From Orbicella franksi (Eukaryota): 64,000 nucleotides of DNA. Made by a program: the position numbers and the translations under genes. The notes under the pieces are model-generated. The model had not been told where the DNA came from. It saw nothing but the letters and a program-made list of their open reading frames with translations, and searched no databases. Below are positions 2,901 through 57,796 of this stretch, in pieces (position 1 is the first letter of the stretch; the number at the start of each line of letters is the position of its first letter). The stretch covers positions 16,492,001-16,556,000 of the forward strand of contig OZ116702.1 of NCBI GenBank assembly GCA_964199315.1. Direction: 5' to 3'.

Positions 2901-3421
2901 CTATAAGTGAGGCAAATAGGCTTATTATCTCACTTTCTGGGGCGTACGTCACACAACGGTGACGTGGATGCTGCAAAGGAGACTAGGAAAGGGTTGCGAA
3001 AAAGTTTGCTTATATCTGTCAACACTGTATTACTGCGTTGGTGAACAGTTTTTAAATAACCTTTCTGCTCTGAGTATGAAGTCCAGAGCAAACATTTTTG
3101 TGAAAGCTTACCATCAGAATCATTATTTTCAGCTAAAAAATGCTTTCATTATTGCTTATTGCAATTTTTCCTCTTCACGACATCACTTTTTTTTTATGAA
3201 AAAGAGTAATTCCATATTACACAAAGGTTAGCTGATATCAATCACCATTCACTTGGACATTCAGTGGTTTGCTCATAGGGCACTTTGATTATACTCCTGG
3301 ATCAACACTTGGGAAGATTCAAATAGTGAATATTTGCTAAGCTTCTCTCAATGCTCGGACGTTTAACCCTCTGGATATCATTTGAGCCTCGTAAACGCCT
3401 GACAAAGCCAGTTCTACTCAC

Positions 3422-3561
3422 TTTCACTTGCTTTCTGCTATCCTTGGCTGAAGCGTAGATCCACTCGATGATCAAAATAAATAAACCAACCACGACGCTG
3501 ATGACCAACAGGATAAATACTCCCAGCATGCCTTGCAACGACATCTTTTGCACGGTATTAC
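3422..3561 (-). CDS. iGluR exon 14 (M4)
   Basis: CAG acceptor, phase 1; MSLQGMLGVFILLVISVVVGLFILIIEWIY (M4); donor AAA|GTGAGT. Confidence 0.92.
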
Positions 3562-4903: not shown

Positions 4904-5085
4904 CTTTGTCCTGCTGTTCCTCAAAGTTGTCCATCAATTCACATTTCACTTTCTCCTCTGTCCACTTATGAGTCAGACTGCTGATTATAAAATCATTTTG
5001 AAGCCGAAACAACTCCATTTTGAACAAGGGCGTGTAGGGAGAGTCCCGAGCAAAAGCAAAGCCATACCCATAGGTGTTTCCAAAT
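4904..5085 (-). CDS. iGluR exon 13 (S2 end); donor is either GC at 4903 or GT at 4894 (then the exon ends at 4895)
   Basis: CAG acceptor, phase 2; FGNTYGYGFAFARDSPY...LFRLQ...HKWT...KC (second Cys of the conserved S2 disulfide). Confidence 0.9.
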
Positions 5086-9700: not shown

Positions 9701-9871
9701 CCGCCAGTGACCTTCATTTTGCCACAGTACTTCTTTTGCCGTGAAACATAATCCAAAATGGGCCGGTCCGAGATAAAGGCAAAGTCACCCTCCATCGCTC
9801 TGTTGATGGCAGCTTCGTAACCAGGCATCCATGTCTTGTGCTGCTCCATGAATTGTCCCATTACCAGGTAA
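9701..9871 (-). CDS. iGluR exon 12 (S2)
   Basis: TAG acceptor, phase 2; YLVMGQFM...GYEAAINRAMEGDFAFISDRPILDYVSRQKKYC; donor GG|GTAAGG. Confidence 0.93.
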
Positions 9872-10464: not shown

Positions 10465-10781
10465 CTTGGAACATCTGTTTCTTTAAAAAACGTCTGGAGC
10501 TGTGAATCTTTGAGTGTTCCGTACTCAATGCGAGTTTGACGCGCCAAGTCAGAAATAGTTTCAATGGGTGTTTGCATCCGGGACACAGTGAGATGAGCGG
10601 CCAGATTGGCTGTGTATGTGGCGTTGATGATCATCACAGCGAACCAGAAAACAGATACCGTCATTCTCCCGGACCATGACCTAGGATGTTCGGCGCCCTG
10701 TCGAACATACGCCTTCCACGATGACCAAACAGAGTTGCTTAAGCTCAGGGTTTCAGCTTCCTTGATGACTTCTGGTTTAAG
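10465..10781 (-). CDS. iGluR exon 11 (M2 pore loop, M3, S2 start)
   Basis: SLSNSVWSSWKAYVRQGAEHPRSWSGR...ATYTANLAAHLTVSRM...EYGTLKDS; donor AG|GTAAAG, phase 2. Confidence 0.96.
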
Positions 10782-11110: not shown

Positions 11111-11386
11111 CTGTTTGGATGGTTTAACTTGAAGGCATCTTCCGTAATATCCCCACGGACTAAAGAGACTACAGATCCACAATAAAAACCCCATAACCAT
11201 CACCAGCACACAAATTGCTATCCACAGATTCTGGCCGAATGGTAACAAGAATCTGAAATAGTTCACTTTCACTTCCTGAACACGCATCATGAAGGCCAGT
11301 CCAAAGGTCATGTACGGCTGAGTGAAATCCAACACTGTTTGACGATCAGAGCTAATAGTCATTGGTGCAATACTCATGTCAGCTGT
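11111..11386 (-). CDS. iGluR exon 10 (S1 end + M1)
   Basis: ADMSIAPMTISSDRQTVLDFTQPYM...FLLPFGQNLWIAI (M1); canonical splice sites. Confidence 0.95.
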
Positions 11387-11728: not shown

Positions 11729-11938
11729 CTGACTAATTATCTCTTCCACTACACCATTCCACTGTAAAGTATTTCTGTCTCTCACTCCAAATTTTCCATC
11801 AGGAACAAGATATATCCTGTAATTGAACTTCAATTTCTTCTTCATCTCCTCCAAAATATCGATGCTAAGGCCTTCAAATTCCTCAGTTGTATTCGGGGAT
11901 GAGTTACCGTCGTTTTTCAACATAACGAATGGTGGAGC
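11729..11938 (-). CDS. iGluR exon 9 (S1 ligand-binding segment)
   Basis: APPFVM...FEGLSIDILEEM...FNYRIYLVPDGKFG...WNGVVEEII; canonical splice sites, phase 0. Confidence 0.95.
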
Positions 11939-12418
11939 CTGTGAGGAGATAGGGAACGTTCAATAAATTGCATCGCTCTGTACATGTGTCTACAAAGTAG
12001 ATTCCACTCGTGTACCTGGAAATCGCCGAGGAAAGGAAACAAGAAAATTTAAAAAAAAAACAGCCTTTCCACACACTTCACACGTACGCAGACCCTCGAT
12101 ACTTCTGGTATTTGCAAAAGGAAAGGCATGGCCTGACCACGGATTAGCAGACGTGAGAAGTGGGACATATTCAGTACAAAAAAGACAAATTACAGACAAT
12201 TTACTCAACGATGCTTGTGTTAGTAGTATAAAGCAATAGCTGAATCACTTCCCTCCAGTCCACCTTTAGATCTGCTACCAGGAACTTGCAGCTCAGGATG
12301 GCTGATTATGTACCATGTGACCGGCTCGTACAGTAAGGGCACATTATTTTGCAGTACGAGATAATCTACCTCAGAAATTGTCTAGATAAAGCAATTGAGT
12401 TGTCTTCATACTTCTTAC

Positions 12419-12550
12419 CAAAATCGTGGCTATGTTAAGAGTTTTGCCTTTGAGGATATTTGGGATGTCAAGTGGTGTTCTTGTGCTGCCTGACGACCAC
12501 ACTGGTGTTTCGTTCTTAAACATATCTATCTTTTCATTCCACTCTCCAAC
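12419..12550 (-). CDS. iGluR exon 8 (ATD-S1 linker)
   Basis: CAG acceptor; VGEWNEK...LKGKTLNIATIL; donor TTG|GTAAGA. Confidence 0.9.
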
Positions 12551-13038
12551 CTGCAAACGCAGTAAAGCTCGATATACAAATATGAAAATACCACAAGGAT
12601 GTCTATTTGCTTTGACTAATTAGAATGCACGTCTAAAAAAGGATTTTTAAATGCACATGTCCAAGTAATATACCTTGATAGCGGAAATAACACGAATCCA
12701 CTCATTTCATTAAAAAAAAAATAGCTAATTCTGTTAGTAAGTAATTTAATTAATCGCTCTTAGCAATTGAAGGTATTGGTGTTTTAGAATTGTGGGCACA
12801 ATGGACATTGTCACTAACAGGAAACATTTCAATTCACCATAAAATGTCTTTGTTGTTTTAAATAATGATGAAAACTCCAGCAAATCGCTAATTATCTCCT
12901 CAAATTCTGTAGTGAAAAGTCAGTTCGGAAAATTTAAAGTGATGCAAACAGCGACCATACACGAAAAAATAAAAACATCAGCAGACGCTTTTACTCCTTT
13001 GAGCTAACATACAAAATTTTTCAAAAGACTGTGCTTAC

Positions 13039-22181: not shown

Positions 22182-23610
22182 TCGTAGTTTAAGGAGGAAT
22201 AAAACTCAAATAGCGGTGATAAACATATTAAACTTACGCATTTTAATAACTTGACGTTTCGTATGCTACGCAACATACATTTTCAAAAGTGGAATAAAGA
22301 CCGTTACAATTTTTGAAAACTATATATGAAATGTAAATAGGGAGTCTGGAAACGAGATTAAGAAACATCTGTTTCTTAACAGTAAAACAATAAAAGCCTA
22401 AGCTTATTAATAAAGTATCAGCTTCTCATTGTTGACGTTTACATTAAGAGTCGGCTTAAGTTCTTGGATGAGCAAAGTTTCTTTAATTTTACAAAGATAA
22501 TCTGTTTTACCAGAAGCTAGAATATCAAAATGATCCCACTTGATGTAGTGACCTGTGGCTTTTATATGGTTGGCAATGGCTGATGTGGGGTCATTCTTAG
22601 TGAGAGCCCTGAAATGTTCCGTTTTCCTATCACGAAGCCGTCGTTTTGTTTTGCCCATGTAAAAGTCACTGCAGTCCCAGCAAGCAGCTTTATAAATGAC
22701 CTTAGATCTCTGTGAACGATTTAGACGGTCCTTGTATTGAAAGAAAGATTTGATTCGGCGAGAGCTTCGAAAAATTATCTTAAGATTGACAAATGAACAG
22801 AAATTGTATACACATGATCTCAGACGCTTAGAGATTTGGTAACTTTGCACACCTAAGTAAGGTAAAAAGATGATAATATCTTTCCTCGGAACCGTAGGGA
22901 CAGGGCTGCTTGGCTTGTTTCTGTTTCTGTTTAGGACGTCGTTAATGTTGTAAGTGATAATACCTTGTGGGTAGCCGTTTTGAAGCAGGAGTTAGCGAAA
23001 GTCATCAAGGGCAGATTTAAGCAGGAAAGCGGAGGAGCAAATTCGGTAACAGCGATAAGTAAGTGTACGAATGAGATTTATTTTGTACTTGCGTGGAGTG
23101 AAGGACTCCCATTTAGTATAAAGGCCAGCAAACGTCTTTTTCCAGTAGATGGATGTGGCAAAAGTGTTGTTTGGGCAGCGTTTGATGAGGATGTCTAAAA
23201 AAGGAATTTCATTGTCTTGTTCAAAATCAGTAGTAAATTTGATACTCTCATGACGACTGTTTAAATATCGCAGGAACTCATTAGCAGTGTCTTTGCTGTC
23301 AAACATGGTGAAAGTGTCATCAACGTACCTATACCAGAGTGACGGACGAATTTGACCTTTCGTGACCCATCTTTCTTCAAAGTGACACATGAAAATGTTC
23401 GCCAAAACTGGGCCTAACGGTGAACCCATGGCTACTCCATCTATTTGGTCGTAGTATTGGTCATCGAAGAGAAAATGGCTTTTCTTAGTGGCAAATTCTA
23501 ATAATTTATGCAGAGCATCACAAGGTAATGTCGGAGGATCGGGTAGAGAATACAGTTTTTCAAGACAAATCTGTATTGTTTCATCGAATGGCACATTTGT
23601 AAATAGTGAG
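22182..23610 (-). mobile_element. Penelope-like element, left arm (5'-truncated RT + GIY-YIG + 3' UTR), same orientation as the host gene
   Basis: SLFTNVP, GVAMGSPLGP, WYRYVDDTF RT motifs; VIYKAACWDCSDFYMGKT GIY-YIG; RT and endonuclease are in one frame, broken by a TAA at 22992-94. Confidence 0.95.
22249..22290 (-). ncRNA. Minimal type-I hammerhead ribozyme (U3-A8 variant) in the PLE 3' region, host-sense strand
   Basis: Minus strand ACTT-TTGAAAA-T-GTATG(ttgcgtag)CATAC-GAAA-CG-TC^-AAGT: stem I ACTT/AAGT, stem II GTATG/CATAC, palindromic ACGT stem III, GUC cleavage triplet. Confidence 0.72.
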
Positions 23611-23616
23611 CAATAG

Positions 23617-24250
23617 TGAACAAGACAATGAAATTCCATTTCTAGACATCCTCATCAAACGCTGCCCAAACAACACTTTTGCCACATCCATCTACCGGAA
23701 AAAGACGTTTGCTGGGCTTTGTACTAAATGGGAGTCCTTCACTCCACGCAAGTACAAAATAAATCTCATTCGTACACTTACTTATCGCTGTTACCGAATT
23801 TGCTCCTCCGCTTTCCTGCTTAAATCTGCCCTTGATGACCTTCGCTAACTCCTGCTTCAAAATGGCTACCCACAAGGTATTATCACTTACAACATTAACG
23901 ACGTCCTAAACAGAAACAGAAACAAGCCAAGCAGCCCTGTCCCTACGGTTCCGAGGAAAGATATTATCATCTTTTTACCTTACTTAGGTGTACAAAGTGA
24001 CCAAATCTCTAAGCGTCTGAGATCACGTGTATACAATTTCTGTTCATTTGTCAATCTTAAGATAATTTTTCGAAGCTCTCGCCGAATCAAATCTTTCTTT
24101 CAATACAAGGACCGTCTAAATCGTTCACAGAAATCTAAGGTCATTTATAAAGCTGCTTGCTGGGACTGCAGTGACTTTTACATGGGCAAAACAAAACGAC
24201 GGCTTCATGATAGGAAAACGGAACATTTCAGGGCTCTCACTAAGAATGAC
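23617..24250 (+). mobile_element. Penelope-like element, right (inverted) arm, part before the BEL insertion
   Basis: Reverse complement of 22589-23222 with about 12 substitutions by eye; shares the same TAA stop. Confidence 0.95.
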
Positions 24251-24445
24251 TGTTACCGCCGAAGAACAGTATTTTATTTTTGTTTTATTTTGATCGTGAC
24301 GTTTCGTGTCAATCACATGAAGTAGCTTGCAAAACTTTGTAACCACCCGGACGGACTCACGTGGAACTGATTTTGTAAAACTTGGACGTGTCTTTGGTTA
24401 TTAAAAAAGTGTTAAAATCAAATTTGTTGTCGTTATGCGAGTTCA

Positions 24446-26617
24446 TTGGGGACTAAAGAAGTAGCGGCAACATTTTCTGGTCCTTCGAGCCGGATTAGAA
24501 CGAGCGAATCGAAGAATTTGGAATTTGGTGTGGCGAAGATTTTGGAATTTGGTATGGAATCGACCGAAGCGACTGATGGCGGTCGCCATCTTGGCCATTT
24601 GGATTCAGCTCGTACTGTGAGTACTAACATTGTTACTTTAAAAAACAAACGGGCAGCCGTCAAAAGAAGGATCACGAACACGTTGAAGAAATTAGAGTCC
24701 ACCATCGAACAGTATGGTCGAAAAGCGATTATACGTGGATATGTCAACAACTTGCAGGAATATCTTAACGAAGCGAAAGGCCTCAATGATGAACTCGTCT
24801 CAGTGATCCCAGAGAACGAGCACGAAGCCGCAATAGATTGGTATGAAGAACAACTCGATAGAGTCGAAGACGCTAAACTTCAGGCCAACGCACATCTTGA
24901 CGAGCGGGCAGAGGAAAGTTCTAGCGGATTAAGCTCGGTGAAATCATGGAAAACTTCTTCGACAAGAAATGTCTCCCAAGCGGCCGAAATTCGCGCCAAA
25001 ATTACTTCAGCAGAAATTAAAGCAAAACAACTTGCCTTGGAGGAACAGCGAAGAAGAGAGGAGTTCGAAAAACAACTGGAGGTTAAAAGGAAACTTGAAC
25101 TTGTCCAAGATGAAGCTCAAAGGCTAAAATTCATGGCTGAAGAAAGAAGAAAGACTCAGGAAGCCAAGGACGAGGCTGCACGCCTCGCAGCAGAAGCAGC
25201 AGTGTTACAAAAGGTACAAAATGAAGTTAATGATCCGGAAGCTTTGTCTAATCGATTGCTTGATTTTGAGGATGATTCATTGAAATTTGTTCCATCATCT
25301 AATCTTGATGAACCGTTAACAATAATTCCTCCACTACTCCCTGGTTTGTTGCAAGGAACTGGAGCAAATCATGGAACTGCATTGCCACCTGACAACCCTA
25401 CAAAAGTTGTTACACCTTCACCTTTGTTACAACAGCCAAAGTCAGCTGTTTCATTTATTGCACCTCAGGGCACGAAAAAACCTAATGAAACATTGCCTTT
25501 GTATCACTCGTGGATTGGAGATTTACAAAGTGGAGTACAGCATCCAGCTTTAACTAGTACGGACAACCGAAAAACAACCATTTGTGGTCATTCTATTCGT
25601 GACTCTCTTCCAAAGTTACGCCTAAGTAAGTTTGATGGTGACCCTTTACACTGGTCTGATTGGTCCTCAATGTTTAAATCAATTGTTCATGATGCTAATC
25701 TGTCCCTTAATGGCAAAATGCAACATCTTCAGAACTCTGTTATTGGTAAAGCTAAGTCTGCAATTGAAGGATATGGATACAGTGGAGATTCCTACTATGA
25801 AGCACTGAAAGAACTGGAATCCAGATTTGGCAAACCTTCCCTTGTTGTGAAAGTCACACTTGACAAACTGAAAAAAACAGCTCGATTACAAAATGACAAA
25901 CCTCAAGAAGTGAGAAATCTGTCAGATGTTGTGTCAACTACTGTGTGGACATTTAAGAAGTTTGGATATGAAAGTGATCTGAAAGCAGAAGCAAATGTTT
26001 CCCTTGCCGTTGACAAACTGTCCCAGGAGCTCAAAATCAAATGGAAGGACAACACCAAAGCTACCAAACTGGAACGACCTAGTCTTCATGACTTCAGTGT
26101 GTGGTTAAAAGGTCAGGCGGATATTTATGATGATTGTTGTTACCCAAAAATGTCAAGTAAGTTTCCATTCCAACCTCATAAGAAACCTCGGTCTGGTGGA
26201 TCAAATGGAATGACTGAAAAACAGAACACTTTCTCAAGTAACATTTCACCTCGCCCCAGGCCAACAAAGTCCTCTTGCATTATGGGTGATGGGAAGGAAC
26301 ACAAGTTATCTTCTTGTCCCAAGTTTAAGGCTCTAAGTGTGGAAGAACGCCTAAATGAAGTACAGAAACATAAGTTGTGCTTTTGTTGCCTCAGTCCTCC
26401 ACATTGGCTTAGCAATTGTTCAAATCAAAAACAGTGTGGTGTAAATGGGTGTACGCGATCACACAATGCTCTGTTGCACAACTTGAGAAATGTTTCGGTG
26501 GAAAGCAGTGATGCAGTGTCTGCTATTAACCCAGTAGCACAAGCCGAAGTTGGTTCGTCTACTGAACATTCTAACACATCTCCAGAAGCAGTCACACCTC
26601 TGTTTTGTTACAAGTAG
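24446..26617 (+). CDS. gag: BEL/Pao gag (coiled coil, DUF1759-type capsid region, three zinc-knuckle-like motifs)
   Basis: LPKLRLSKFDGDPLHW...MQHLQNSVIGKAKSAI; CFCCLSPPHWLSNC, CGVNGCTRSHNALLH; the true start is probably a downstream ATG (MESTEAT). Confidence 0.9.
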   Translation: MGTKEVAATFSGPSSRIRTSESKNLEFGVAKILEFGMESTEATDGGRHLGHLDSARTVSTNIVTLKNKRAAVKRRITNTLKKLESTIEQYGRKAIIRGYVNNLQEYLNEAKGLNDELVSVIPENEHEAAIDWYEEQLDRVEDAKLQANAHLDERAEESSSGLSSVKSWKTSSTRNVSQAAEIRAKITSAEIKAKQLALEEQRRREEFEKQLEVKRKLELVQDEAQRLKFMAEERRKTQEAKDEAARLAAEAAVLQKVQNEVNDPEALSNRLLDFEDDSLKFVPSSNLDEPLTIIPPLLPGLLQGTGANHGTALPPDNPTKVVTPSPLLQQPKSAVSFIAPQGTKKPNETLPLYHSWIGDLQSGVQHPALTSTDNRKTTICGHSIRDSLPKLRLSKFDGDPLHWSDWSSMFKSIVHDANLSLNGKMQHLQNSVIGKAKSAIEGYGYSGDSYYEALKELESRFGKPSLVVKVTLDKLKKTARLQNDKPQEVRNLSDVVSTTVWTFKKFGYESDLKAEANVSLAVDKLSQELKIKWKDNTKATKLERPSLHDFSVWLKGQADIYDDCCYPKMSSKFPFQPHKKPRSGGSNGMTEKQNTFSSNISPRPRPTKSSCIMGDGKEHKLSSCPKFKALSVEERLNEVQKHKLCFCCLSPPHWLSNCSNQKQCGVNGCTRSHNALLHNLRNVSVESSDAVSAINPVAQAEVGSSTEHSNTSPEAVTPLFCYK
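24478..24495 (+). promoter_or_regulatory. Primer-binding site complementary to the 3' end of tRNA-Tyr
   Basis: TGGTCCTTCGAGCCGGAT is the reverse complement of ATCCGGCTCGAAGGA-CCA, the canonical eukaryotic tRNA-Tyr(GUA) 3' end; it lies 5 nt after the 5' LTR. Confidence 0.9.
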
Positions 26618-29600
26618 TACCAGTAACCCTCTATGGTCCAAAGGGATATTTCAACACATATGCTATGCTGGACACAGGAAGCACTTGCAGCTTGCTGTTA
26701 GTAGATGTTGCTGGAAGACTTGGTTTGGATGGTCCTTTGGAAAGTGTGGTCTTAAATGGAATTCAGAAAACATCTGAGCTTATGACAAAGCGTGTTAATG
26801 TACAAGTCAGCCGATTGAATGACTTTGGTACCCAATTTGATGTGAATGGAGTTCTTGTAGTTGATCACCTGAATGTGCCAGAGAAGAAAGTGAAACTTGA
26901 TGAGCTACAAGAAAGATGGCCACACCTATCAGACTTGGAGCTCACTGAAGTCGCTGGGACTCAAGTCACTTTGCTCCTTGGTAGTGATGTCCCGGAACTT
27001 ATTGTTCCCCTGGAAACTCGACATGGTCCAAAGGGTTCCCCTGTTGGTGTTCGCACTAGGATTGGATGGACTGTTACTGGTCGCTTACCTGGCCATATTC
27101 AAGAATGTGAATCTGTTTGTAAAGTTCATGTGGCGACTCCGGATGAGGAACTCAATGACACCGTAAAAACTTGGTGGCGAACAGAGAACTTTGGTTGTCG
27201 TTATGACAATGATACGCAGCGCTCAGTTGAAGATGAAAGAGTCATGAAATTCTTGAATGAAAGTACACGTAAGGTGGATGGTCGTTATGAGGTTCCTTTG
27301 ATTTGGCGTGATGACAAAGTCAAACTTCCTGACAATTTTGCTGCAGCTGCTCAACGTCTGAATTTTCTGGAGAAGAAGCTTAATCGTAATCCCGAGTTGG
27401 CAGAAAGATACAGGAAAACTATTGACATGGATATGGAAAAGGGATACATCAAAAAGCTTACTAAGGAGGAAGCAACTGCACCAGCCATGCGCAAATGGTA
27501 CCTTCCTCACCACCCTGTTCTGAACCCCAAGAAACCTGAGAAGGTTCGTCGAGTATGTGATCCCACTGCAAAGTTTCAAGGCTCATCATTAAACAGCCAA
27601 CTTCTTAGTGGCCCAGATTTGCTGAACAACCTTGTTGGAATTTTCATGAGGTTTCGAGAAGAAAAGGTTGCGCTTTCAGGAGACATTGAAGCGATGTTTA
27701 ACCAAGTTGCTGTCCCAGAAGAAGATCAAGCTTCCCTTCGATTTCTGTGGCGTCAATCTCCTGAATCATTGACAGAAGTCTACCAGTATGTGCGTCACAT
27801 ATTTGGAGCCAAATGTGCGTCAACCTGTGCTAACTATGCTCTGTTGAGAAGTGCAGAAGATAATGAGAAGCAGTTTCCGAATGCTGCCTTTGCCGTAAAG
27901 CGAAACTTTTACATGGATGACCTTTTCAAGTCTGTTAAATCAAGTGATCAAGCTCTGGAACTGCAACAAGAACTTGTTGAAATGCTAAACAAAGCAGCTT
28001 TTCACTTGACCAAGTGGATCTCTAATGAGACAGAAGTGATCGAGCGAATACCAGAATCGGAAAGAGCGCCCTCTATCAAGGTTGTGGAGGAAAGCATCGT
28101 AATGCCTATGGAACGTGCTCTTGGTGTCGTTTGGGATACCAGCTCAGATTGTTTTGTCTATGAAGTGGTGAAGAGAGACATTGCGGACACGCGTCGGAAG
28201 ATTCTGAGCTTGATAGCATCCCTCTTTGATCCGATTGGATTTCTAGCTCCATTTCTGGTCAGAGCAAAAATCTTCCTCCAGCATGTGTGGCAGTTAGGTA
28301 TTGGATGGGATGATGCACTGCCACCAGAGTTTCTAAAGGAGTGGTCCAAATGGCAGGAAGAGCTGGATGGAATTGCACAGTTTCACATTCCCCGTTTCTA
28401 TCGTCACATACCAGACAACCGGTCTGTTATTGACCTTCACATCTTTGGAGATGCCAGTGAACAAGCATTTTGCGCAGTGGCTTATTTCAGATTCTGCTAT
28501 GTCAGTGGAGCAGTGCGATGTGCATTTGTTACAGCGAAGACTCGGGTAGCCCCGAAGAAACCCTTGAGCATCCCAAGGCTTGAACTGCAGGCTGCTGTTT
28601 TGGGTGCAAGATTGGCTGCTGTAGTGATTAAGGAACATGATTACATCATTGATTCCACCTATTATTGGACAGACAGCAGTACTGTGTTTCAGTGGATTCG
28701 TGGAGTGTCTAAGCGCCACTCCGCCTTTATTGCTAATAGAATTGGAGAGATCCTGGACAGCACCGAACCCAACCAATGGAACCACTGTCCTGGACAGATA
28801 AATCCTGCAGATGATGGCAGCAGGGGACTTCCAGTGAGCTCTATTACTTCTGGGAGTCGTTGGGTAAATGGCTCTGCCTTCTTACACTTACCTGAAGAGA
28901 GATGGCCAAAGGGAAATGCAAAGCTTGAAATTCCCAAGCCGTCCGATGATGACCCACAAGCCCAAGAAATGGCCATTACTTGGACTGGTGTGGTGAAAGG
29001 TTCAAAGAACGATTTCTTATCTCCAGCGAAATACTCATCTCTAACAAAGCTTCTCAGAGTAACTGCTTACCTGAAACGGTTTATATATAACTGTAAGCAC
29101 CCCAAATCTGAACGTCACATTGGTTCTTTGTTGGTTGAAGAGATGGAGCAAGCTCGAAAGTTTTGGATCTGCGTTGCCCAAGCAGAATCCTTTCCTCAAG
29201 AAGTTGCAGTTCTCAAGTCGAAACAGCATGTTTCAAGCAAGAGCAAATTGGTATCTCTCTCACCATTCCTTGATGGGCATGAAATCATTCGTGCAGGTGG
29301 TCAAATTGAGAGAGCCGATATTCCATTTTACAGTCGTCACCCTGTGGTACTAGCACCAGATCATGAGTTGACCCGTCTCATCATCATGAACTGTCACGAG
29401 AAATTGAAACATGAAGGAGTGGACCAAGTACGAAATGAGTTGAGACAACAGTATTGGATCTTACGCTGTCGTGCTACAGTGCGAAAGATCCTTCATCAGT
29501 GTTCTTACTGCAGAAGGCGAAAAGCGAAACCAGAAGCACCCTTGATGGCAAGTCTACCATATGATCGCTTAAGTGTTGCACCACCATTCTCGAAAGTTGG

Positions 29601-30486
29601 CGTGGATTTCTTTGGTCCTCTTAAAGTGAAGCATCTTAGAAAAGAGGAGAAGAGATATGGTTGTCTCTTTACTTGCTTGGTGACTAGAGCAGTTCATTTG
29701 GAGGTTGCATTTGACTTGTCAACCGATTCCTTCATCATGTGCCTTAGGCGGTTTATGGCTCGAAGAGGTAAACCAACTGTGATTTACTCCGACAATGGAA
29801 CAAACTTTGTAGGAGCAGACCGTGAGTTACGTGAATGCATCGATGGCTGGAATCAGCATAAGATCGGCAGTGAGTTGAGCCAAGAGGGAATTCAGTGGGT
29901 ATTTAACCCGCCTGCCGCACCTCATATGGGAGGTGTATGGGAGCGCCTCGTACGATCATGCAAGAAAGCCCTTAATGTTGTTCTACAGAAACAAGTTCTT
30001 ACTGATGAGGTGTTGCTTACCGCCTTTGCTGAAGTGGAATGGGTTGTGAACAGTCGTCCGCTTACTGAAGTCAGCTCGGATGTGGATGACCTTGAAGCTC
30101 TGACACCGAATCATTTCCTCATTGGAAGAGGATCTCTCAACTTACCGCCCGGTATCGTTGACGACAAGGAGTTGTCAAGTCGCAAACGTTGGCGACAAGC
30201 ACAAGTGGTGGCAAATCATATTTGGAGTCGTTGGTTAAGAGAGTACCTACCTGGGTTGATTACTCAAAAGAAATGGACTCAACCTACTGTAAATGTCAAG
30301 GTCGGAGATTTGGTGTTAGTGGTTGATCGGGCAGTTTCAAGAGGTTTCTGGCCCCTTGGCAGGATCGTAAAAGTCTTTCCTGGACTTGACAGTATTGTAA
30401 GATCAGCAGACGTGAAAACGAAGTTTGGAGTAATGAGACGCCCTGTGACAAAACTTGCCGTCCTTGAAGAGTGTTCGACCAACTAA
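26605..30486 (+). CDS. pol: BEL/Pao pol (aspartic protease, RT, RNase H, integrase)
   Basis: MLDTGS protease; DIEAMFNQV and FYMDDL RT; DASEQAF RNase H; HHCC zinc finger plus VDFFGP / SDNGTNF / WERLV DDE integrase. Confidence 0.96.
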   Translation: MLQVVPVTLYGPKGYFNTYAMLDTGSTCSLLLVDVAGRLGLDGPLESVVLNGIQKTSELMTKRVNVQVSRLNDFGTQFDVNGVLVVDHLNVPEKKVKLDELQERWPHLSDLELTEVAGTQVTLLLGSDVPELIVPLETRHGPKGSPVGVRTRIGWTVTGRLPGHIQECESVCKVHVATPDEELNDTVKTWWRTENFGCRYDNDTQRSVEDERVMKFLNESTRKVDGRYEVPLIWRDDKVKLPDNFAAAAQRLNFLEKKLNRNPELAERYRKTIDMDMEKGYIKKLTKEEATAPAMRKWYLPHHPVLNPKKPEKVRRVCDPTAKFQGSSLNSQLLSGPDLLNNLVGIFMRFREEKVALSGDIEAMFNQVAVPEEDQASLRFLWRQSPESLTEVYQYVRHIFGAKCASTCANYALLRSAEDNEKQFPNAAFAVKRNFYMDDLFKSVKSSDQALELQQELVEMLNKAAFHLTKWISNETEVIERIPESERAPSIKVVEESIVMPMERALGVVWDTSSDCFVYEVVKRDIADTRRKILSLIASLFDPIGFLAPFLVRAKIFLQHVWQLGIGWDDALPPEFLKEWSKWQEELDGIAQFHIPRFYRHIPDNRSVIDLHIFGDASEQAFCAVAYFRFCYVSGAVRCAFVTAKTRVAPKKPLSIPRLELQAAVLGARLAAVVIKEHDYIIDSTYYWTDSSTVFQWIRGVSKRHSAFIANRIGEILDSTEPNQWNHCPGQINPADDGSRGLPVSSITSGSRWVNGSAFLHLPEERWPKGNAKLEIPKPSDDDPQAQEMAITWTGVVKGSKNDFLSPAKYSSLTKLLRVTAYLKRFIYNCKHPKSERHIGSLLVEEMEQARKFWICVAQAESFPQEVAVLKSKQHVSSKSKLVSLSPFLDGHEIIRAGGQIERADIPFYSRHPVVLAPDHELTRLIIMNCHEKLKHEGVDQVRNELRQQYWILRCRATVRKILHQCSYCRRRKAKPEAPLMASLPYDRLSVAPPFSKVGVDFFGPLKVKHLRKEEKRYGCLFTCLVTRAVHLEVAFDLSTDSFIMCLRRFMARRGKPTVIYSDNGTNFVGADRELRECIDGWNQHKIGSELSQEGIQWVFNPPAAPHMGGVWERLVRSCKKALNVVLQKQVLTDEVLLTAFAEVEWVVNSRPLTEVSSDVDDLEALTPNHFLIGRGSLNLPPGIVDDKELSSRKRWRQAQVVANHIWSRWLREYLPGLITQKKWTQPTVNVKVGDLVLVVDRAVSRGFWPLGRIVKVFPGLDSIVRSADVKTKFGVMRRPVTKLAVLEECSTN

Positions 30487-31639: not shown

Positions 31640-31807
31640 CTTGTTCTATATTATCAAAGTCATCAGTCGAATTTGCAAACCTTATCAAACCTCGTAGTTT
31701 GATCTCCGGATAGTTAACTGTGTCGTTATTAACGTGATCAAGAGCAATTCTAAATGCTTCTTCTTCCATGGTTCTGTTCATTCCAAGTTCTGTAGAAAAC
31801 ACCGCCC
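31640..31807 (-). CDS. iGluR exon 2 (amino-terminal domain)
   Basis: CAG acceptor, (G)AVFSTELG...EEAFRIALDHVNND...DNIEQ; donor G|GTGAG; phase 1 to phase 1. Confidence 0.9.
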
Positions 31808-34539
31808 CTGAAATACCACAGTGACGGGCATATTAATGCATGGAATGACATGATTGACCTTATTACTGATTATTTTAGCAAAAGTAGATTTCCTGCTGTC
31901 TTAAGAGGTGATACTGAATTTAGTCTAACAAATCAGTTTGGGGAGTTATTTTAGAAACCTTACGAAAAACATAAACATGATTGTGGCGGCAAGCCGACAA
32001 ATACAATGGAGAAAATGGTAAAGAAACTCAAAAAGATGAGTGTTCAGTGAGGCTAAAAATATGACTTAAGGTGGCTGATTCTTATTATAGAAACCTATGC
32101 CAAAGCGCGGTAGTATTGATTCCGACAAAGTATAGGTGATGGAAAGAGCTGGAAATTACTGTCAACCCCAATAAAGTGTATATGACAGATATTTTCTTAT
32201 TTGCTTGATGGAATCTACATGACATCATGATATGGAAATCGAAAAAAATTGGATATCATTGTTCCTTTCACCGCGTCTTAGCTATCTGGAAACGTGAAAT
32301 TTCACTTCCGGTTGGCTCACAGGGTGTGATGCCAAAAATACATATCTTTCGTAAATATTTACAATTTTGAGCCAAAATTGGAATTACGCATGATTGCCTA
32401 ATTCCTAGTATATTTCACTTACTTTTTTTTTCGTTTCTATTTGTTTGGTTCTAAAAACTATATCACGTTCTCATATATATACCGTCAAGCAAATAAAAAA
32501 TATGTGTATTATACACTTTAAAGGCACTGCTTCACTCTAATTAATAATTAATTTTTATCATTCTGTGCGATAAAGTTTTTGAACAAAAACTACTTTAGAG
32601 GACAGCTATTAAATTAGGAGGAAAATATCGAAGGCGTAACTTAATAATTGATAGAACAGTGATTCAAAATAGGTTTTATCAGATATCAACATTTATCAGA
32701 TATCAACATTCAAAAGAAAATAAAAATTAAAAACTGATATAGTAGAAAAATATCAGTGTCATCATGTCGTCGTGCCTTAATTAGCCTCTAAAATTCACAA
32801 TTTCCTTTTCAAGGATAGTTATTCTGTTGTCTCTCCAATTTACAACCGCTTGTTAGTATTTCAATTATTCATAAACTTCTGGAGTTAGAAGACGACACAA
32901 ATCAGGAGCAAGTACTGGCTTTTAGCACCTGTTAATATACGAAACGTTTTTGGCAAAGATGTTTGACAGTTGTGCTTGCGTAGCCAATAAGATTGCGATT
33001 TTGGTTCATTGCTATGTTACTATCTTCATTCGTGTTAAATCATTGTGTCTTATTAATGTCACTAAACTGTCTTGACCATCCATCAGCTAAACAACTTAGG
33101 TTGATTCATTGACAGATAGAAAGTAGCTGCAGGCGTTAGTGGTTGGTTCAACCGCAAGACCATTTATTAAACACTCACGCCTGCTGTGTACATCCTCCAT
33201 AAATCAAGTCATATGGAGAAAAATACTTAAATTGTTGTCCAGTTCCACTCTGCAGAGTACAAACAATGCACAAAACAAGTGCAAATATCTCACGCTATTG
33301 GTACCCTGAAAGGACGGTTCAACTGTTTTTTCTATAGATCTCTTAATCAATGCCCCTTTTCACCACGCGAGAGCGACAAAACACAAAATTTCGAGAAAGA
33401 ACAAAGCTGGAAAAAAAGTCGCTCATTGAATGTTTAAGTATATAGCTTCACTGCACATTTTTACTTGATTGTGTTTTGACTCTGAGGCTCGTAGATATAC
33501 ACAGCAATACCACATTCTGGAATTTCTAATATTTCTCTCAACTGTTAAAAGGCACGTCCTGCTTCTAGCTGCCGGAACACGTTCGTTCGATACTGTCCTC
33601 CTTCTTTCTAGATACAGCACAGAATGTTAATTCGAGTTTTAAAGTCGCAATTCAGTTTTCGTATGTTTCTTGAATATAGAAAGGGCCATTATGAAAAGTG
33701 GGCAGTAACGAAGAATTTTTTTACAAAAGAAATTTGAAAGGTGTTTTTTTTCTGTTATCACAAATTAAAATTTTTGTTATCATTAGTCATCCATAGATTA
33801 CAGAAACCCTACAGAGCTTTCACTTATTGCTTATTCTTTGTTTGAATTTCAACCGCTGTCATATATGTCACGTTATATATGTCAGTTCACTCAAATATCT
33901 AAATTGCTTTAAATGAAAGCTCCATGATTAAATAACGCCGTTCTTATTTATTTAAGACTTCAAATATTAGAGACCGAATTTAAAAGCCTTGGCCGTATGT
34001 TCTCCTGTGCATTATTAATGACTTCAAAACCACCGTATGCTGTGTTCATAAACAACTGCATATTTAAGGAAGCTTTCTGTCAACCCAGTCAACCTGGTAA
34101 TCCCAAACATTTCACAATATCGAAGCTTTTATCTCCATACACATTTCATTATAACTCTAGATCAGTTAAACATCGCCCTTTAGAACTCTCTGTTGATGTT
34201 AGTTAGTTATAAGCATATGCTAACGGTAAAAAGAAATGTTATATAACGCTGACTTGAAATTTCGTCACACCGTCTAGCGATTAGCGCACATCCAAAATGT
34301 TTTGTCAACTCCCAAAGGAGATTAAGAAATAGCGTCCTTATGAGATCGAAAAACTGTCAAGCGGACATTTTACGCATACGAACAAAGAGAAAACAGATCA
34401 AGAATCAGATATAGTCTACCACATAATATTAAGAATTAGCATTGAAGTGACACAGGAAAAATTGCGTAGCTATCATTACAAAGAGGATTAATTTTTAGAC
34501 CTTCACACGGTGTAAACTTTGTCACGATATGCAACTCAC

Positions 34540-51279: not shown

Positions 51280-54200
51280 TTACAATTCCAATAAGGTTTC
51301 AGCATTTTCCATGTCCACATCGTTGAACCCAGATGGTGTGTATCCATAAGGATAGGACTTGAAGGTGTCCGGATCATCCACACGTTTGTCAAACACCAAT
51401 CCATATCTTTTGGTGCGAGGACCAACTTTTAGCTGTTTGGTGGCCGGATGTCTGGTGAAGAAATTGGGATTGACGACATTGATGTTTCTGCGGTCGTCAA
51501 GAGGATCCTTCAATTCATCTAGAAGCTTCTGGTGCATTATGTTGTAGTTAAGTTGTTGCTGACCACTAACATTGAGGGTGAACCGTTTTACCGTTTACCT
51601 TTACCGTTTTTGGTCTTGTATCCATAATTCTTTGGTCTTGCTGAGGTGAAATCGATAATGTAATCCCCATCGTCAATTCGTTGGTCATTTCACCTAGAAA
51701 GTCTCCCAGAGGAATGTTGGGTTGGCCAGGCTTCCACAAGAAAATGACAGAGTCCGTGTTGAAGTATAAGACTTGTTGTTGCAGCTGCTCTAGATAGGAG
51801 TACAACTTTAAACAGGCCCAACAGGTAGTGAAGGCAGCAATGAAAATGTTGACACGTCCGTTGTCAGGCTGGTTTTCCTTCAGATTTGAGTAGACCACTT
51901 CCAAGGAATCTTGTAAACAAATGCGCACCGTTTGGATGTCTGTGAAGGTGTTTGACACTAGAGCAAAGATATAAGGGGGTGTGGTGACTGCCTCAGTGGT
52001 TTTCTTGTGAAGATTTTTGCCAAATTTGCCCAAAAAGGAATTCAACATTAACTTTGCTGTACATGTACCTTTACGTCTTGGATTTTTTTCAATGAGGAGA
52101 GGATTTAAGGTGATGCCTTTTTTGTCGTGGTAGTCACGGACGTATTGCTGTTTTTGTTCCTCAGTCTACGCCCATCCAGGATACCCGGCTGATTCCTGTT
52201 TCATTTTTAATTGTGTTGACATAGTCAGCAAAGAGCCCTTCTTGACATTGTTCTTCTGGAAAATGCCAGACCTCGTGGATGTGTACTGATGTGGTACCCG
52301 ACCTCTACTGCTTTGACGAGTTCAGGGGTGCACCACTTACCCCTAAGAAGACGTTCCTCTAGAGAGTGAGGACAAAGATGCAATTTTTCCAAGAGGCCCT
52401 TGGTCATCTCTTCCATGCAGGTTCTGCAAAGAGGTAATGACAGTTTACCACGATGTCGGAAGGGCAAGACAGGATGATGCAAATGATAGGGAGGAATCAC
52501 ATCTACTTTTGCTTCATCAAAGTACGCATGGATGTCTTGGTTCTCTGGGTTGGTGATGATGATGGCATGACCAATGGGGTACTCTTGTGTCTTGTTAACC
52601 CACGGGTACAAGGAGGTCACGTCCACGTATTGGATTTGTTCACCCTGGTCCTCATTGGCCACATGATGGAGGCGAACGCCGTTGGTACATCCCCCAAAGA
52701 AGGCATCTCTTGAATTAAGAGATTCGACCATCTCGTACGATGCTAGGAACTGTTTGAGATCTTCATTGCTTTTGACTTCACGATCCCAATCACATTCCCA
52801 CATGATTTTAAGGTTGTACCCGTGCTGGTGAAGAAGACGGTGTTTCTGTTGAGTGACTTCATACAATTCTTGGATGGTACGATCAGGATGGAATTTTGAA
52901 TGTCGGTCATGATGATGGGGATGACAACGAGGACAACCGTGCCATAGACATCCATGAAATTCATAGACAATGTGGTTCTGTACATCGAGGCCATCTACCA
53001 GGAAGTGGAGCACTCTCTGTTCGCCACCATTGCTCGCATGTCGAATGCAGTCTGCTTGAGGCTCATTGTTGGGGGAAGAGGGACTGTCACGACAAAGAAG
53101 GTGTTCCTGCCATGCTAGCCACTTGTATGCTTTTACAGATTGGTTGGTACGAGCTCCTTGCCATCCTTGCATGGGTTCGGTGGCTATGCTGTTGGGAGTC
53201 AGGAGTTTCTTCCACCAGAACTGATTGCACGCAGACGCTATGGTCACACACTTCTCGATGGGGTCAAATTGAGCATGTTGCTGGAATTCTTCTCTGAACT
53301 TTTGACATCCGGCTTTTAGGAGTTTGACATCTGACTCACAGTAGGCTCTTATTTCTGTTTTAAGATTGAAGATGTAGTTGTTTCTGACCTTCTCTGCATA
53401 CCACTGTTCAAATTCTACCTTCTTCTTAGCTGACATGCTATCAGGATTATACATCTCAGCAGGAGGTATGGGTCCTTCATAGTCTTGATTTTCACGAGTA
53501 TTGAATTTGTGTGGAAAGAACCCTTTGATTAATTCTTGGATGCCAAAGGTAGAAGGGAAGTTAGCAAGAGGACAGGGAAGGAAGCAGAGTGAATCTTTGA
53601 AGGTCAATTGGTCTGATTTGAAGGACAGCACTTTGGTGGCGACGGTGATCTGATCCGTGACTTCCCGATACTTCGCCTAGCAATGTTGCATCGGGAACAT
53701 CCCGTCATATCCTTTGAGGTTATGGAAGACAACAATCACACTCCGATCGTCCCCGTCTTGATCCACAGCCAAAGATTCCAACCATTCAAAGAAAGGCTCT
53801 GTACAGTCTGCAACACAGAAGGATTTGTTCTGGTCCTCTTCGTCGCTCTCTGTGCTAAGCAAGATGGGAGTTTGCACTCCCTCGTCGTCCACGGTCGCTT
53901 CATAATCACAACAGACTTGGAGGGGTGGATCTCTCTCTACCCACACTCTGGTATCTGCATCTTCAGGATTGGGTTCTTCAAAAAGGATGCGTTCCAACTT
54001 TGTTGTGTGGTACCCATTTCATTTTGGTATCATCCTCCTCTTCTGGAATGGTCTGGATGTAACATTGGTGAGAAGCGATGTGCACTTGTTGTTCACAAAT
54101 GGGGCACTAACTCCAACCGCAGATATGATCACTGGATTTTCTATCTCCTCTGTGACTTCTTTTTCTCGGTTTTGCCTCATAGGTCTTGCAACACTCCAAG

Positions 54201-54590
54201 CAGAGTGTCACAGATAAAAGGAATATTTTTACCGCGACGATGAAGATGGTAAGAGTAACAGTCTTCACCGAAAAAGGATCGATGATACAGACGGCAAAGA
54301 GAAGAGGGTGAAGGGGATTTGCCCAGACCCAACGGTCGTTTAGCCTCTGTGAAATCCAGGCAGTCCTTTTGATGACACGATGGACACCATTTACCATCGC
54401 AGGGATGATTTTCATGATCATCGTGATCGTACCCCTGATTGCATTTATCACAGAAATATGATTTGTTGAGGAATCCCTTAAACGAGTTACACCCATCCTG
54501 ATGGTCATGAGCACGTGTGGTGGAGTGACCGATAAGACTTTTATTTGATGTTCAGGGAGTGCTGCTTGGAACTTTTGTAGTTCGGAGATG
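51280..54590 (-). pseudogene. polB: Protein-primed family B DNA polymerase, main body (exonuclease + polymerase, with a Vsr-like nuclease insertion), frameshifted
   Basis: CDYEAT / FHNLKGYDG / FKDSL exonuclease motifs; YCESDVKLL; VDG...VYEFHGCLWHGC insert; YVDVTSLYP; LNSFLGKFG; YFNTDS (decayed DTDS). Confidence 0.93.
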
Positions 54591-56772
54591 GTAAGGTAGG
54601 TAAAACTTTATTTATGCAGGGTGGCCCATTCAGCACAGTGGCTGGTATCCAGAGGGGCCCTGCTAAATACAATTTCTAAAAATATAAAATGTCTAATAGT
54701 TTAAAATAGTTATAAAAATAGAGTTAAAAAAAAACTAATGTCTAGTAGTTGAAATAGTTATATAAAAAGAGTTTAAAAAATTGAAACGAGTTACAAGCAT
54801 GAACTGGTAGGGAAAAAAATAGATATCATAAATTAGGTGCTATAAATAAAATGGGCTTTGACAAGATTTTTAAAAGAGGAGAGTGATACAGCTTGTTGGA
54901 TTTTACAAGGTAGTGAATTAAAAAGGGCTGTGCCAGAAAATATTAAAGTACGTTTGCCAAGGCTAAGTTTGGGTTTGGGTAGATGGAGGTCAGCCTTCCT
55001 TCGAGTGTTGTAACCATGTACATTGTAGTTCCTAATGAAATAGTTACTTAAATACTGAGGAACTAAGTTATGCAAACATTTAAAAACTAAAACACATTTG
55101 TGGATTTTATGGTTTGTTTCTAAGTCAGTCCACCCTAAAACATTAAAAGTATCTCTAGAAGAGTCACGCTTGAGAATGATACGGGCAGCACGGTTTTGCA
55201 ACCGCTGCAGACTTTTGCTGGAGCCAACAGACAGTTCACCCCAAGCAGTGTCAGTATAACTTAAGATTGGCTCAATAAGGGTATTGTCGACACACTTCGC
55301 TGCTTTAAGAGTGAGGCAAGATCGTATGCGTGCTAGAAGTCCTAGACGCTTATTAACTTTTTTACAAGTAGTGTCTATATGCTCTTTCCAGTGAAGCTGT
55401 TCATCGAGCATAGTCCCAAGGTAAGTGAACTTCGTCACTCTCTCTATGTCCTTGCTTTGAATCTGCAGGACAAAGTCTGAGGTGGTTTGCAGCAGTTGTC
55501 TTGTTCCAAAGAGTAATCCTTTGGTTTTGCTCTGGTTTAGTATTAGCTTACTGTTCACCAACCACTGCTCAACACGGTTGAGGTCTTCTTGTAAATTTTC
55601 CCTGATGTTGCTAACCTCAGATCCAGAATAATAGATAACAGTGTCATCCGCATACATGCTAATCGACGAGTGCAGTAAACATTGAGGCAAATCGTTTATG
55701 TGTATCACAAATAATAGAGGCCCCAACAAGAAACCCTGAGGAACAGCGAAGTCGAGAGGAAGGCTGGATGATAACTCCTTTCCATATTGAACTCGCTGCG
55801 AGCGGGTGGTGAGCTAGTTTCTGAACCAGCCGAGACTGTGCCCTCTAACTCCATAGTGCTCTAGCTTGTGAAGGAGACATTTGTGGTCAGCAAGATCGAA
55901 AGCCTTTTTTAAGTCAATAAAGGCAGCGCCAGTCAGCTGTTGTTTGTCCATGTGTTCTAATATATGATCAACCAAGTGGACAACCGTGGTTTCAGTAGAA
56001 TGCTTCTTACGGAAGCCGGATTGATATACCGATAGAACTTTGTTAACCTCAAAAAATGCTAACAGTTGAACTTGGACCGCACGTTCCATGACCTTGGAAA
56101 CGAGGGGGAGAACTGAAATCGGACGATAGTTGTTCTCGTCATCCTTTTTTCCTGCCTTAAAAATGGGAGTTACGTTAGCCTCCTTCCACTGAGATGGGAT
56201 TTCGCCAGACGAAATTGTGAGGTTTATGAGATAAGTGATTGGCTTGGCTATTACAGAGGATGCGTCTTTGAGGAGTTTTGCGGGGATTTTGTCAAGCCCG
56301 GTAGCTTTGGATGATTTTAGCTCTGACAGCTCATGGCGCACAAAACTGGCGTTAACTTCTTGCAGAGTAAAGTCATTGTTAACTCTGGGGGCTAAAATTC
56401 TTGGCAAGGTATGGTCTTTGAAGACGCTGCATAGATTCTTTGCAATTGATGAAAAGAACTTGTTAAAGTTCGTTGCCGACATTGTTTCTGATCCTCTGGA
56501 CGCAGATTTCTTTTGTTTAGGTAAGATCTTGTTTAGTGTTCGCCACATTTCTTTAGAGCTTTGATCATTTGAGAGCTGGCTGGAGTAATAACAACATTTT
56601 TCTTTACGTATTTTTGTGTTCACAGCATTACACAATCTTTTGCAGTTGCTCCAGTGAAGCTCTTTGTTTGTTGACATCGCTTTTTTGTGTTGATGATCAC
56701 GCTGGTGCATGAGGTCTTTTATTTCTGGCGTTAGCCATGGCACGGATCTTCCGCGGACACGGCGCGTGACAA
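54591..56772 (-). mobile_element. 5'-truncated LINE (L2/CR1-type RT) inserted in pPolB
   Basis: PWLTPEI, NYRPISVLP, FIDLKKAFD, VPQG.LLGPLLF, YADDT; one nonsense TAG at 55814-16; 3' tail AATAAA then TTACC-like repeats; TSD CGGAGATG at 54583-90 and 56773-80. Confidence 0.95.
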
Positions 56773-57796
56773 CGGAGATGCCACATGGTCCCTCAGGGAC
56801 TCCCGCTAAGTGATGGAGTTCATTGGCCAATCGCTCTTGGACAGGATAGCCTTGTTTGAGATTATGGTAATGATGATCTCGGGTATTACCATTTGCATCA
56901 ATCAAGGCTTTCATGGTCACAATGGCCCAAGCACAAAACAGCTTGTCCTTGTTTTTGATGGGGACGCGGGACGTTTTGACAATCCCAGGAACAGCTGTGC
57001 TGCTTGGTTTGTAGCGTTTGCCATTTCCACTACCAGGTGCAGGGGTATGAATAAATGTTGTCTCCACCGTGAATGAGTTGTCAGGAATGAATTCCTGGTT
57101 GGAGTTTAACTTCTGCGCCAGGGCTTGCAGATATATGTCTAAACGCTCTGACCCGTCCTTGAACTCCCCAATGGTAAACGTCATCAATTGGAAGGCATGG
57201 GTGAATGCGTCTGATTGCATTGTGAAATGCACGGTCGAGTGAGGAGTGAGGTTGCTGTCGGCCTCGATCTGATGGCGGATGGTCCGTCGTAATGCCTCCA
57301 TGACCTCTCGTCCCAAGTCGTCAGTGGGATTGGCTTTGCAGTGTTGCTGTATGTGAGCCTGATATCTGTTTATGCAGGACATCGCACCATATCCTTCGAG
57401 GTCCCACGGGGCGCATCTCAAAATCCAGCACGGCTCTGGTGGTGGTGGTGGTGGTGCCCCACCGACCATTACCCCTTCCGGAGGCAAGGAAGGTCCGTCC
57501 GAAGACGCGCCAGTCGATGGGGACTTTGACATCTCCATGTACAGGTCTAAAGCTGGATGGAAGATCCAATTGTTGTCATCATCAAAGAACGCATCGTCGT
57601 GTGACCTTTTAGTTCCTACAAGACCTGGCTTTTGCCCCAGGGAACGGCTTCAACGGGGTGTGATGACCAGGGGAAACGATCGCGGAGGGGATAGAGATTG
57701 GCTTCAGAGCAAAACACGCTGATGTGGCTGTGAAGTGAACATGACTGCCTCACGACTAGCTATGAAATGACTCAATGATACACATGCACTGCTCAT
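56773..57796 (-). pseudogene. pPolB gene N-terminal region (before the LINE insertion)
   Basis: One frame from ATG 57796 (or 57742) with TGA at 57704-06 and 57650-52; IKNKDKLFCAWAIV...GVPEGPCGIS; rejoins ELQKFQAALP at 54583 in frame once the LINE is removed. Confidence 0.75.

Follow-up and report, generated by a model that had tools for sequence, protein, structure and literature searches.

The receptor gene and its subfamily

The window, i.e., the whole stretch of 64,000 nucleotides of Orbicella franksi DNA that was analysed, has a G+C content of 39.9% and is free of N runs. It holds a receptor gene of 13 exons on the minus strand, extending from about 31.8 kb to 3.3 kb, with a frame that is open throughout. 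The exons were found by tblastn with the nearest full-length homologue (P0009) together with enumeration of frame-compatible GT/AG junctions. They encode the ATD, S1, M1, pore, M3, S2, and M4, and the frame ends at a TGA stop (3302-3304). The gene is single-copy in the window's genome. Its exons are:

31640-31832, minus strand: E1, start of the ATD (tblastn; the N-terminus parallels the published GluE4_Adi)
22006-21737, minus strand: E2, ATD (tblastn to P0009, junction enumeration, Pfam ANF_receptor)
17769-17492, minus strand: E3, ATD (tblastn to P0009, junction enumeration)
15968-15825, minus strand: E4, ATD (tblastn to P0009, junction enumeration)
14795-14622, minus strand: E5, ATD (tblastn to P0009, junction enumeration)
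13137-13039, minus strand: E6, ATD (tblastn to P0009, junction enumeration; E6/E7 joint RNA-supported)
12419-12550, minus strand: E7, ATD-S1 linker and start of S1 (tblastn to P0009; RNA joint 11937/12418; loose end matches E6)
11729-11938, minus strand: E8, S1 of the ligand-binding domain (Pfam Lig_chan-Glu_bd, 8.5e-19; RNA joints)
11111-11386, minus strand: E9, end of S1 (PMTISSDR, R485 equivalent) and M1 (Pfam Lig_chan-Glu_bd; RNA joints 10781/11111 and 11386/11729)
10465-10781, minus strand: E10, 317 bases, M2 pore helix, selectivity-filter limb, M3 (TYTANLAAH gate) and start of S2 (Pfam Lig_chan, 9.6e-24; both splice joints in RNA contigs)
9701-9871, minus strand: E11, S2 (AFISDRP, Asp705 equivalent) (tblastn; RNA joint 9871/10465; loose end matches 5056-5085)
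4943-5085, minus strand: E12, end of S2 (GYGFAF..., conserved Cys) (tblastn; RNA loose end identical to 5056-5085)
3302-3561, minus strand: E13, M4 helix, short C-terminal tail, TGA stop 3302-3304 (tblastn; junction by GT/AG and frame alone)

The pore exon is present in nine RNA runs. RNA contigs from two polyA runs and one further RNA run join 9701-9871, 10465-10781, 11111-11386, 11729-11938, and 12418-12552, and the overhanging ends correspond to the predicted exons E12 and E6. Among the joints of E2-E6, the one with RNA support is E6/E7. The RNA joint also sets the E9 donor at 11111, not 11129. The signal-peptide exon or start codon was looked for and not located.

The gene is a member of the ionotropic glutamate receptor (iGluR) superfamily. 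The ATD is of the periplasmic-binding-protein type, with E2 matching PF01094 (ANF_receptor) at 8.3e-09, above the curated cut-off. The two-lobed S1/S2 domain is matched by PF10613 on E8 and E9 and possesses both the backbone-fixing Arg485 (PMTISSDR) and the acidic residue 705 (AFISDRP). The membrane part matches PF00060 at 9.6e-24 and contains the gate TYTANLAAH, and the M4 exon aligns to P0009.

Within the superfamily, the gene is the coral orthologue of GluE4_Adi, a member of the Epsilon subfamily (GluE), and is neither an AMPA nor a kainate receptor. In a maximum-likelihood tree of the LBD and TMD, from which NMDA sequences were left out, the window protein groups with the coral transcript P0009 and with amphioxus, hemichordate, and crinoid proteins (SH-aLRT 90-97). 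It lies outside the 39-row clade of AMPA and kainate receptors (SH-aLRT 98). Sister to the clade that holds it is Trichoplax TRIADDRAFT_55165; TriadG55165 is GluE1_Tad in Ramos-Vicente et al., 2018 (PMC6307864). A motif search of the alignment published there identified the orthologue labelled GluE4_Adi (Acropora digitifera aug_v2a.00972), and thus the receptor has already been catalogued. The two genes match exon for exon and share the SWKAYVRQ-GADH-PNC-WSGR pore, the TYTANLAAH gate, the S2 residues, and the glycine-type positions 653 and 655. They differ in that the published model is 798 aa long with a transmembrane part of 93 aa and no M4, whereas the window gene has an M4 exon (3302-3561). 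The public GluE4_Adi model is therefore probably truncated, rather than the protein being naturally short, and the window supplies a gene model with M4 for this receptor. The pore of GluE4 is not singled out in the published study, and the functional tests reported there include no cnidarian Epsilon receptor (PMC6307864).

The ligand pocket is predicted to be of the glycine type, as the sequence-only reading of the window had proposed. Under the published rule, Ser653 with a non-polar residue at 655 indicates glycine, while Gly653 with Thr655 indicates glutamate (PMC6307864). The GluA2 triplet GST aligns to SQL in the window protein, which gives Ser653 and Leu655, and both Arg485 and Asp705 are kept. 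Predicted glycine selectivity is common among Epsilon receptors and does not define the subfamily.

Basic residues in the pore exon

The pore lies in E10, where the minus strand at 10733-10680 of the window translates to SVWSSWKAYVRQGAEHPR. The residues at and around the pore apex are:

10701-10703, minus strand: Arg at the Q/R/N site (pore apex), codon CGA (HMMER alignment, W(-8) spacing, model, RNA contigs)
10713-10715, minus strand: Lys at -4, codon AAG, final turn of the M2 pore helix, where Gly/Ala/Ser is usual (HMMER alignment to GluA2)
10689-10691, minus strand: Glu at +4, codon GAA, the acidic polyamine/Ca2+ site (D590 equivalent), retained (GluA2 alignment, orthologues)

A phmmer search against all PDB chains aligned E10 to GluA2 (E 1e-22). 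The window Arg falls on the GluA2 Q/R residue (GluA2(R) 'afmRqg'), and the Lys falls on the conserved Gly of 'sLGaf', four residues upstream of the Arg. The alignment contains one gap only, of a single residue, in the descending limb after QGxx. The register of the site is fixed by invariant landmark residues, since the Trp at -8 stands exactly eight residues ahead of the site in 260/263 homologues. An AlphaFold2 model of the exon, with 58 homologous segments in the input and a mean pLDDT of 70, has a helix at exon residues 14-26, coil from exactly R27 onward, and the M3 helix at 36-69. As modelled, this is the layout of a re-entrant pore loop whose apex is the Arg, with K23 belonging to the final turn of the helix. 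With the isolated exon model as query, the Foldseek matches were AMPA and kainate receptor membrane domains only (TM 0.35-0.43, rmsd ~12 A). Folding the fragment on its own accounts for the low TM-scores, and for the same reason the model backs the layout and fold class, not the side-chain geometry.

The sequence-only reading had described a genomic CGA Arg at the Q/R site (10703-10701), on which the HMMER alignment, the W(-8) register, and the AlphaFold2 model agree. It had also described a Lys for Gly four residues upstream in the pore helix, and the AAG at 10715-10713 does lie on the GluA2 Gly. Both phmmer and the exon model put Arg at the apex. The earlier side-by-side comparison with edited GluA2 holds in its register, but the two strings are unequal in length, the descending limb being one residue shorter in the window protein.

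Between the site and YTANL, the limb of the window protein counts 29 residues; AMPA/kainate types have 30, and NMDA-like sequences and the other cnidarian Epsilon sequences have 31. Counted from the alignments, a 29-residue limb occurs in 6/263 sequences and is thus rare, not unique; this length is shared by just one amphioxus Epsilon group. The filter limb RQGAEHP (10683-10703) is two residues shorter than that of sister coral Epsilon receptors (GQGPDGYHP) and one shorter than that of GluA2/GluK2. NMDA receptors have Asn at the site, W-G at -5/-4, and a long limb (31), in contrast to Arg, W-K, and 29 in the window protein, where the residue at -5 is Trp. By sequence reading, the cavity-lining positions of M3 (as given in PMC2931155) carry no added charge. 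The gate motif TYTANLAAH (10596-10622) ends in His, or in Tyr in some orthologues, where SYTANLAAF ends in Phe.

Both basic residues are conserved. About 10 coral orthologues keep K and R (P0151, P0152, L023-L026, L028-L030), all of them within WSSWK(A/G)YVR. These orthologues are exon-sized ORFs and genomic contigs from coral-associated assemblies, and they are genomic because their introns align too. Among them, the codons of Arg (CGA/CGT, with CGT in L023) and Lys (AAG/AAA) show synonymous changes, and the acidic codon at +4 is GAA, GAG, or GAT. The dN/dS of the pore exon is 0.03-0.09 at a dS of 0.9-2.2; low dN/dS with high dS indicates old divergences under strong constraint. The retention of K and R exceeds chance. 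A distant relative on a 582-bp metagenome scaffold (L027:40-354, exon 66% identical) keeps the Arg and has Leu at -4 and Gln at +4, which suggests that the Arg is older than the Lys. An exhaustive protein-database search, run with queries other than the spliced protein, returned no full-length orthologues, only exon-sized fragments (P0001, P0002, P0010). In two orthologues the Q/R-site Arg is directly followed by another Arg, at +1: VRRS in L023:9878-10192 and VRRG in P0152. This is the same position as the functionally proven genomic Arg of an acoel AMPA subunit (PMC13520880).

The residue at the site varies among the paralogues of the same genome. Epsilon paralogues have G (L002, L003, L008), E (L005), or S (L015), and AKDF-like paralogues have Q. 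Across species, every cnidarian Epsilon subclade has one fixed residue of its own. The G type occurs in ~25 species, Nematostella among them; Actinia, Oculina, and Acropora have the E type, and Desmophyllum has the S type. The coral Epsilon receptors thus constitute a natural mutagenesis series at a key selectivity position (Gly, Glu, Ser, and Arg), with each variant conserved across many species. A survey of paralogues and transcripts, as the earlier reading had suggested, is thereby in hand, with G, E, S, or Q in the paralogues and Arg in the RNA contigs. That reading had framed the subunit as GluA2/GluK2-like. The gene is an Epsilon receptor outside the AMPA/kainate clade with G, E, or S in its sister genes, and so to speak of the 'hard-coding of an edited site' misframes its evolution. 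One of the G-type paralogues, L003 (G000:C13:13402301-13405603), has an uninterrupted frame of 956 codons and thus appears to be intronless, unlike the 13-exon gene in the window.

The site also varies in other receptors: of those newly described in the 2018 study, no more than roughly a third have Gln there (PMC6307864). In our survey, a genomic Arg was found in insect kainate-type subunits (P0243, P0272, P0239, P0234, P0237), Lys in a mite, and His in spiders. Some fishes have a genomic Arg at the site, as cited in a 2026 paper (PMC13520880), which itself describes an acoel AMPA subunit with a chromosomal Arg at the next position. In heteromers, the acoel Arg linearised the current-voltage relation and removed Ca2+ sensitivity (PMC13520880). 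The acoel, fish, and insect subunits share with the window protein a fixed basic residue at or beside the apex without editing. They differ in being bilaterian, AKDF, and glutamate-gated, and in having no basic residue at -4. Given these genomic arginines, a hard-coded Arg is not a new kind of variation. Lys at -4 was found in 0/~260 other receptors (141 + 119 iGluRs), in which the column holds Gly, Ala, Ser, or Val. The conserved Lys is, by sequence comparison among these ~260 receptors, the sole unprecedented detail.

Possible function of the basic pore

We found no electrophysiology in the literature for any cnidarian Epsilon receptor, and thus all functional statements are by analogy across subfamilies. 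The closest in kind is the Trichoplax GluE1alphaA, an Epsilon receptor activated by glycine and alanine in which the non-canonical Q/R/N residue tunes Ca2+ permeation and polyamine block (PMC12226733). It differs from the window receptor in that its native residue is Ser, that it has no Lys at -4, and that its R form is artificial. The engineered S642R receptor had very small Ca2+ currents and was poorly expressed (PMC12226733). Edited GluA2/GluK2 share with the window protein the apex Arg, the QG that follows, and the acidic residue at +4. With their Arg, Ca2+ permeability and conductance are low, polyamine block is absent, and homomers let chloride through. The window receptor differs from them as an Epsilon receptor with a genomic CGA/CGT, not an edited CAG, a glycine-type pocket, Lys for Gly at -4, and a filter limb that is one residue shorter.

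For the Lys, the nearest evidence is an arginine scan of GluK2. Arg at -4 was tolerated and gave functional homomers, and -4 lies on the face of the helix that thiol reagents reach from the cytoplasm (-3/-4, -7/-8, -12; PMC2442176). Chloride permeated only those channels whose Q/R site itself had a basic side chain, and Arg at -4 alone gave no chloride permeation (PMC2442176). Trp at -4 (G586W) abolishes polyamine block (PMC2931155). A molecular dynamics paper (PMC12377769) contains nothing on chloride or the pore helix.

By these analogies, we lean towards the reading that the GluE4 orthologue is a hard-wired subunit that lowers Ca2+ flux, polyamine block, and conductance, probably in heteromers. 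The Arg would act as in edited GluA2/GluK2 and GluE1alphaA S642R, repelling divalents, relieving polyamine block, and lowering conductance. The subunit would most probably co-assemble with Epsilon subunits of the G, E, or S type that the same genome encodes, and serve as their hard-wired 'low-calcium' partner. A heteromeric role is the most economical because all-Arg pores conduct and express poorly. The Lys would face the cytoplasmic vestibule and make the potential at the inner mouth more positive, which would hinder the entry of cations and polyamines still more. Its orientation is taken from experiments on kainate and AMPA receptors, and the shorter limb and the Trp at -5 could alter the packing. 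If this reading is right, the 'calcium-impermeable subunit' solution, reached by editing in vertebrates, would also have been reached by an ordinary coding change in a non-bilaterian, glycine-type lineage. For coral biology, it would bear on whether glycine-gated signalling can be uncoupled from Ca2+ entry.

The alternative that survives best, which we nonetheless consider unlikely, is that the protein forms a homomeric glycine-gated channel of very low conductance and mixed cation/chloride permeability, in which rings of Arg and Lys make a shunting or inhibitory receptor. GluK2(R) homomers and all GluK2 mutants with a basic residue at the Q/R site are chloride-permeable (PMC2442176), the Lys at -4 is a conserved feature of this orthologue group alone, and the second Arg at +1 in two orthologues (L023, P0152) suggests selection for more positive charge. 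These points are offset by the failure of Arg at -4 alone to give chloride permeation in GluK2, by the retained acidic residue at +4, by the lack of added charge at the cavity-lining positions of M3, and by the poor expression of all-Arg pores of the placozoan Epsilon receptor (PMC12226733). The sequence-only reading had offered the Lys as a possible source of anion permeability. The GluK2 scan (PMC2442176), in which a basic -4 came without chloride permeation, weakens that proposal: the Lys alone is not expected to confer anion permeation, and if the pore passes chloride at all, the Arg would be the cause. The earlier interpretation as a whole is partly supported.

Less plausible still is a subunit that conducts barely or not at all and serves, in the manner of GluD, in signalling, structure, or assembly, with basic pore residues that reflect a lost need to conduct. 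Such a role would fit the departure of the gate (TYTANLAAH/Y) from SYTANLAAF and the two or three basic residues in the pore, and no currents were obtained from GluE7, an Epsilon receptor of amphioxus (PMC6307864). The constraint on the exon speaks to the contrary, as neither a dN/dS of 0.03-0.09 over the pore and M3 nor the constrained QG, E+4, and P of the filter is expected of a dead pore.

A bolder extension of the chloride argument, which we hold to be very unlikely, is that the stacked basic residues (Lys at -4, Arg at 0, and in some species Arg at +1) and the short filter make scleractinian GluE4 a predominantly anion-conducting, glycine-gated, fast inhibitory iGluR. An anion-conducting or inhibitory role of GluE4 is speculation by analogy. 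If the bolder reading is true, GluE4 would be an inhibitory receptor on a glutamate-receptor scaffold that evolved independently of the Cys-loop glycine receptors.

The genomic reading of the pore would mislead if RNA editing recoded it, e.g., by changing the AAG Lys to Arg, Glu, or Gly. In principle, A-to-I editing can recode AAG. The contigs of three RNA runs, assembled independently, agree with the genome at every position of the pore exon, and in one orthologue the Lys codon is AAA, which is still Lys. The comparison uses assembled contigs, which hide minority variants, and hence it is at the consensus level that editing neither makes nor removes the Arg and that the mRNA encodes Lys and Arg just as the DNA does. 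We regard recoding as highly improbable. The Arg is thus independent of editing, as had been claimed from the genomic letters, being genome-encoded and read with the same letters in three RNA-seq assemblies. A decaying gene copy or an artefact of assembly or alignment merits practically no credence: nothing favours it, the sole gap being the signal-peptide exon, and it is contradicted by the open frame over 13 exons with spliced polyA transcripts, by orthologues conserved with low dN/dS, and by an alignment register fixed by invariant residues. A pseudogene or misalignment is excluded by the spliced RNA, the low dN/dS, and the W(-8) register.

Mobile elements around the receptor gene

The introns of the receptor gene hold a BEL/Pao retrotransposon and other reverse-transcriptase ORFs. 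The BEL/Pao-type LTR retrotransposon lies in the first large intron (24416-30483) and has long open frames that encode DUF1759 (gag-like), Peptidase_A17, RVT_1, integrase, and DUF5641. At 22410-24322 are two near-identical ORF sets in inverted orientation, with a reverse-transcriptase match at 22995-23651 and an adjoining ORF of 194 aa that has no Pfam match. This arrangement recalls Penelope-like retroelements, a group known to carry hammerheads.

Downstream of the 5' end of the receptor gene, the region 51500-57650 looks like a Polinton/Maverick-like element with an inserted retroelement. An ORF for a protein-primed type B DNA polymerase (DNA_pol_B_2, 52228-53676) adjoins two reverse-transcriptase ORFs there (54836-57649).
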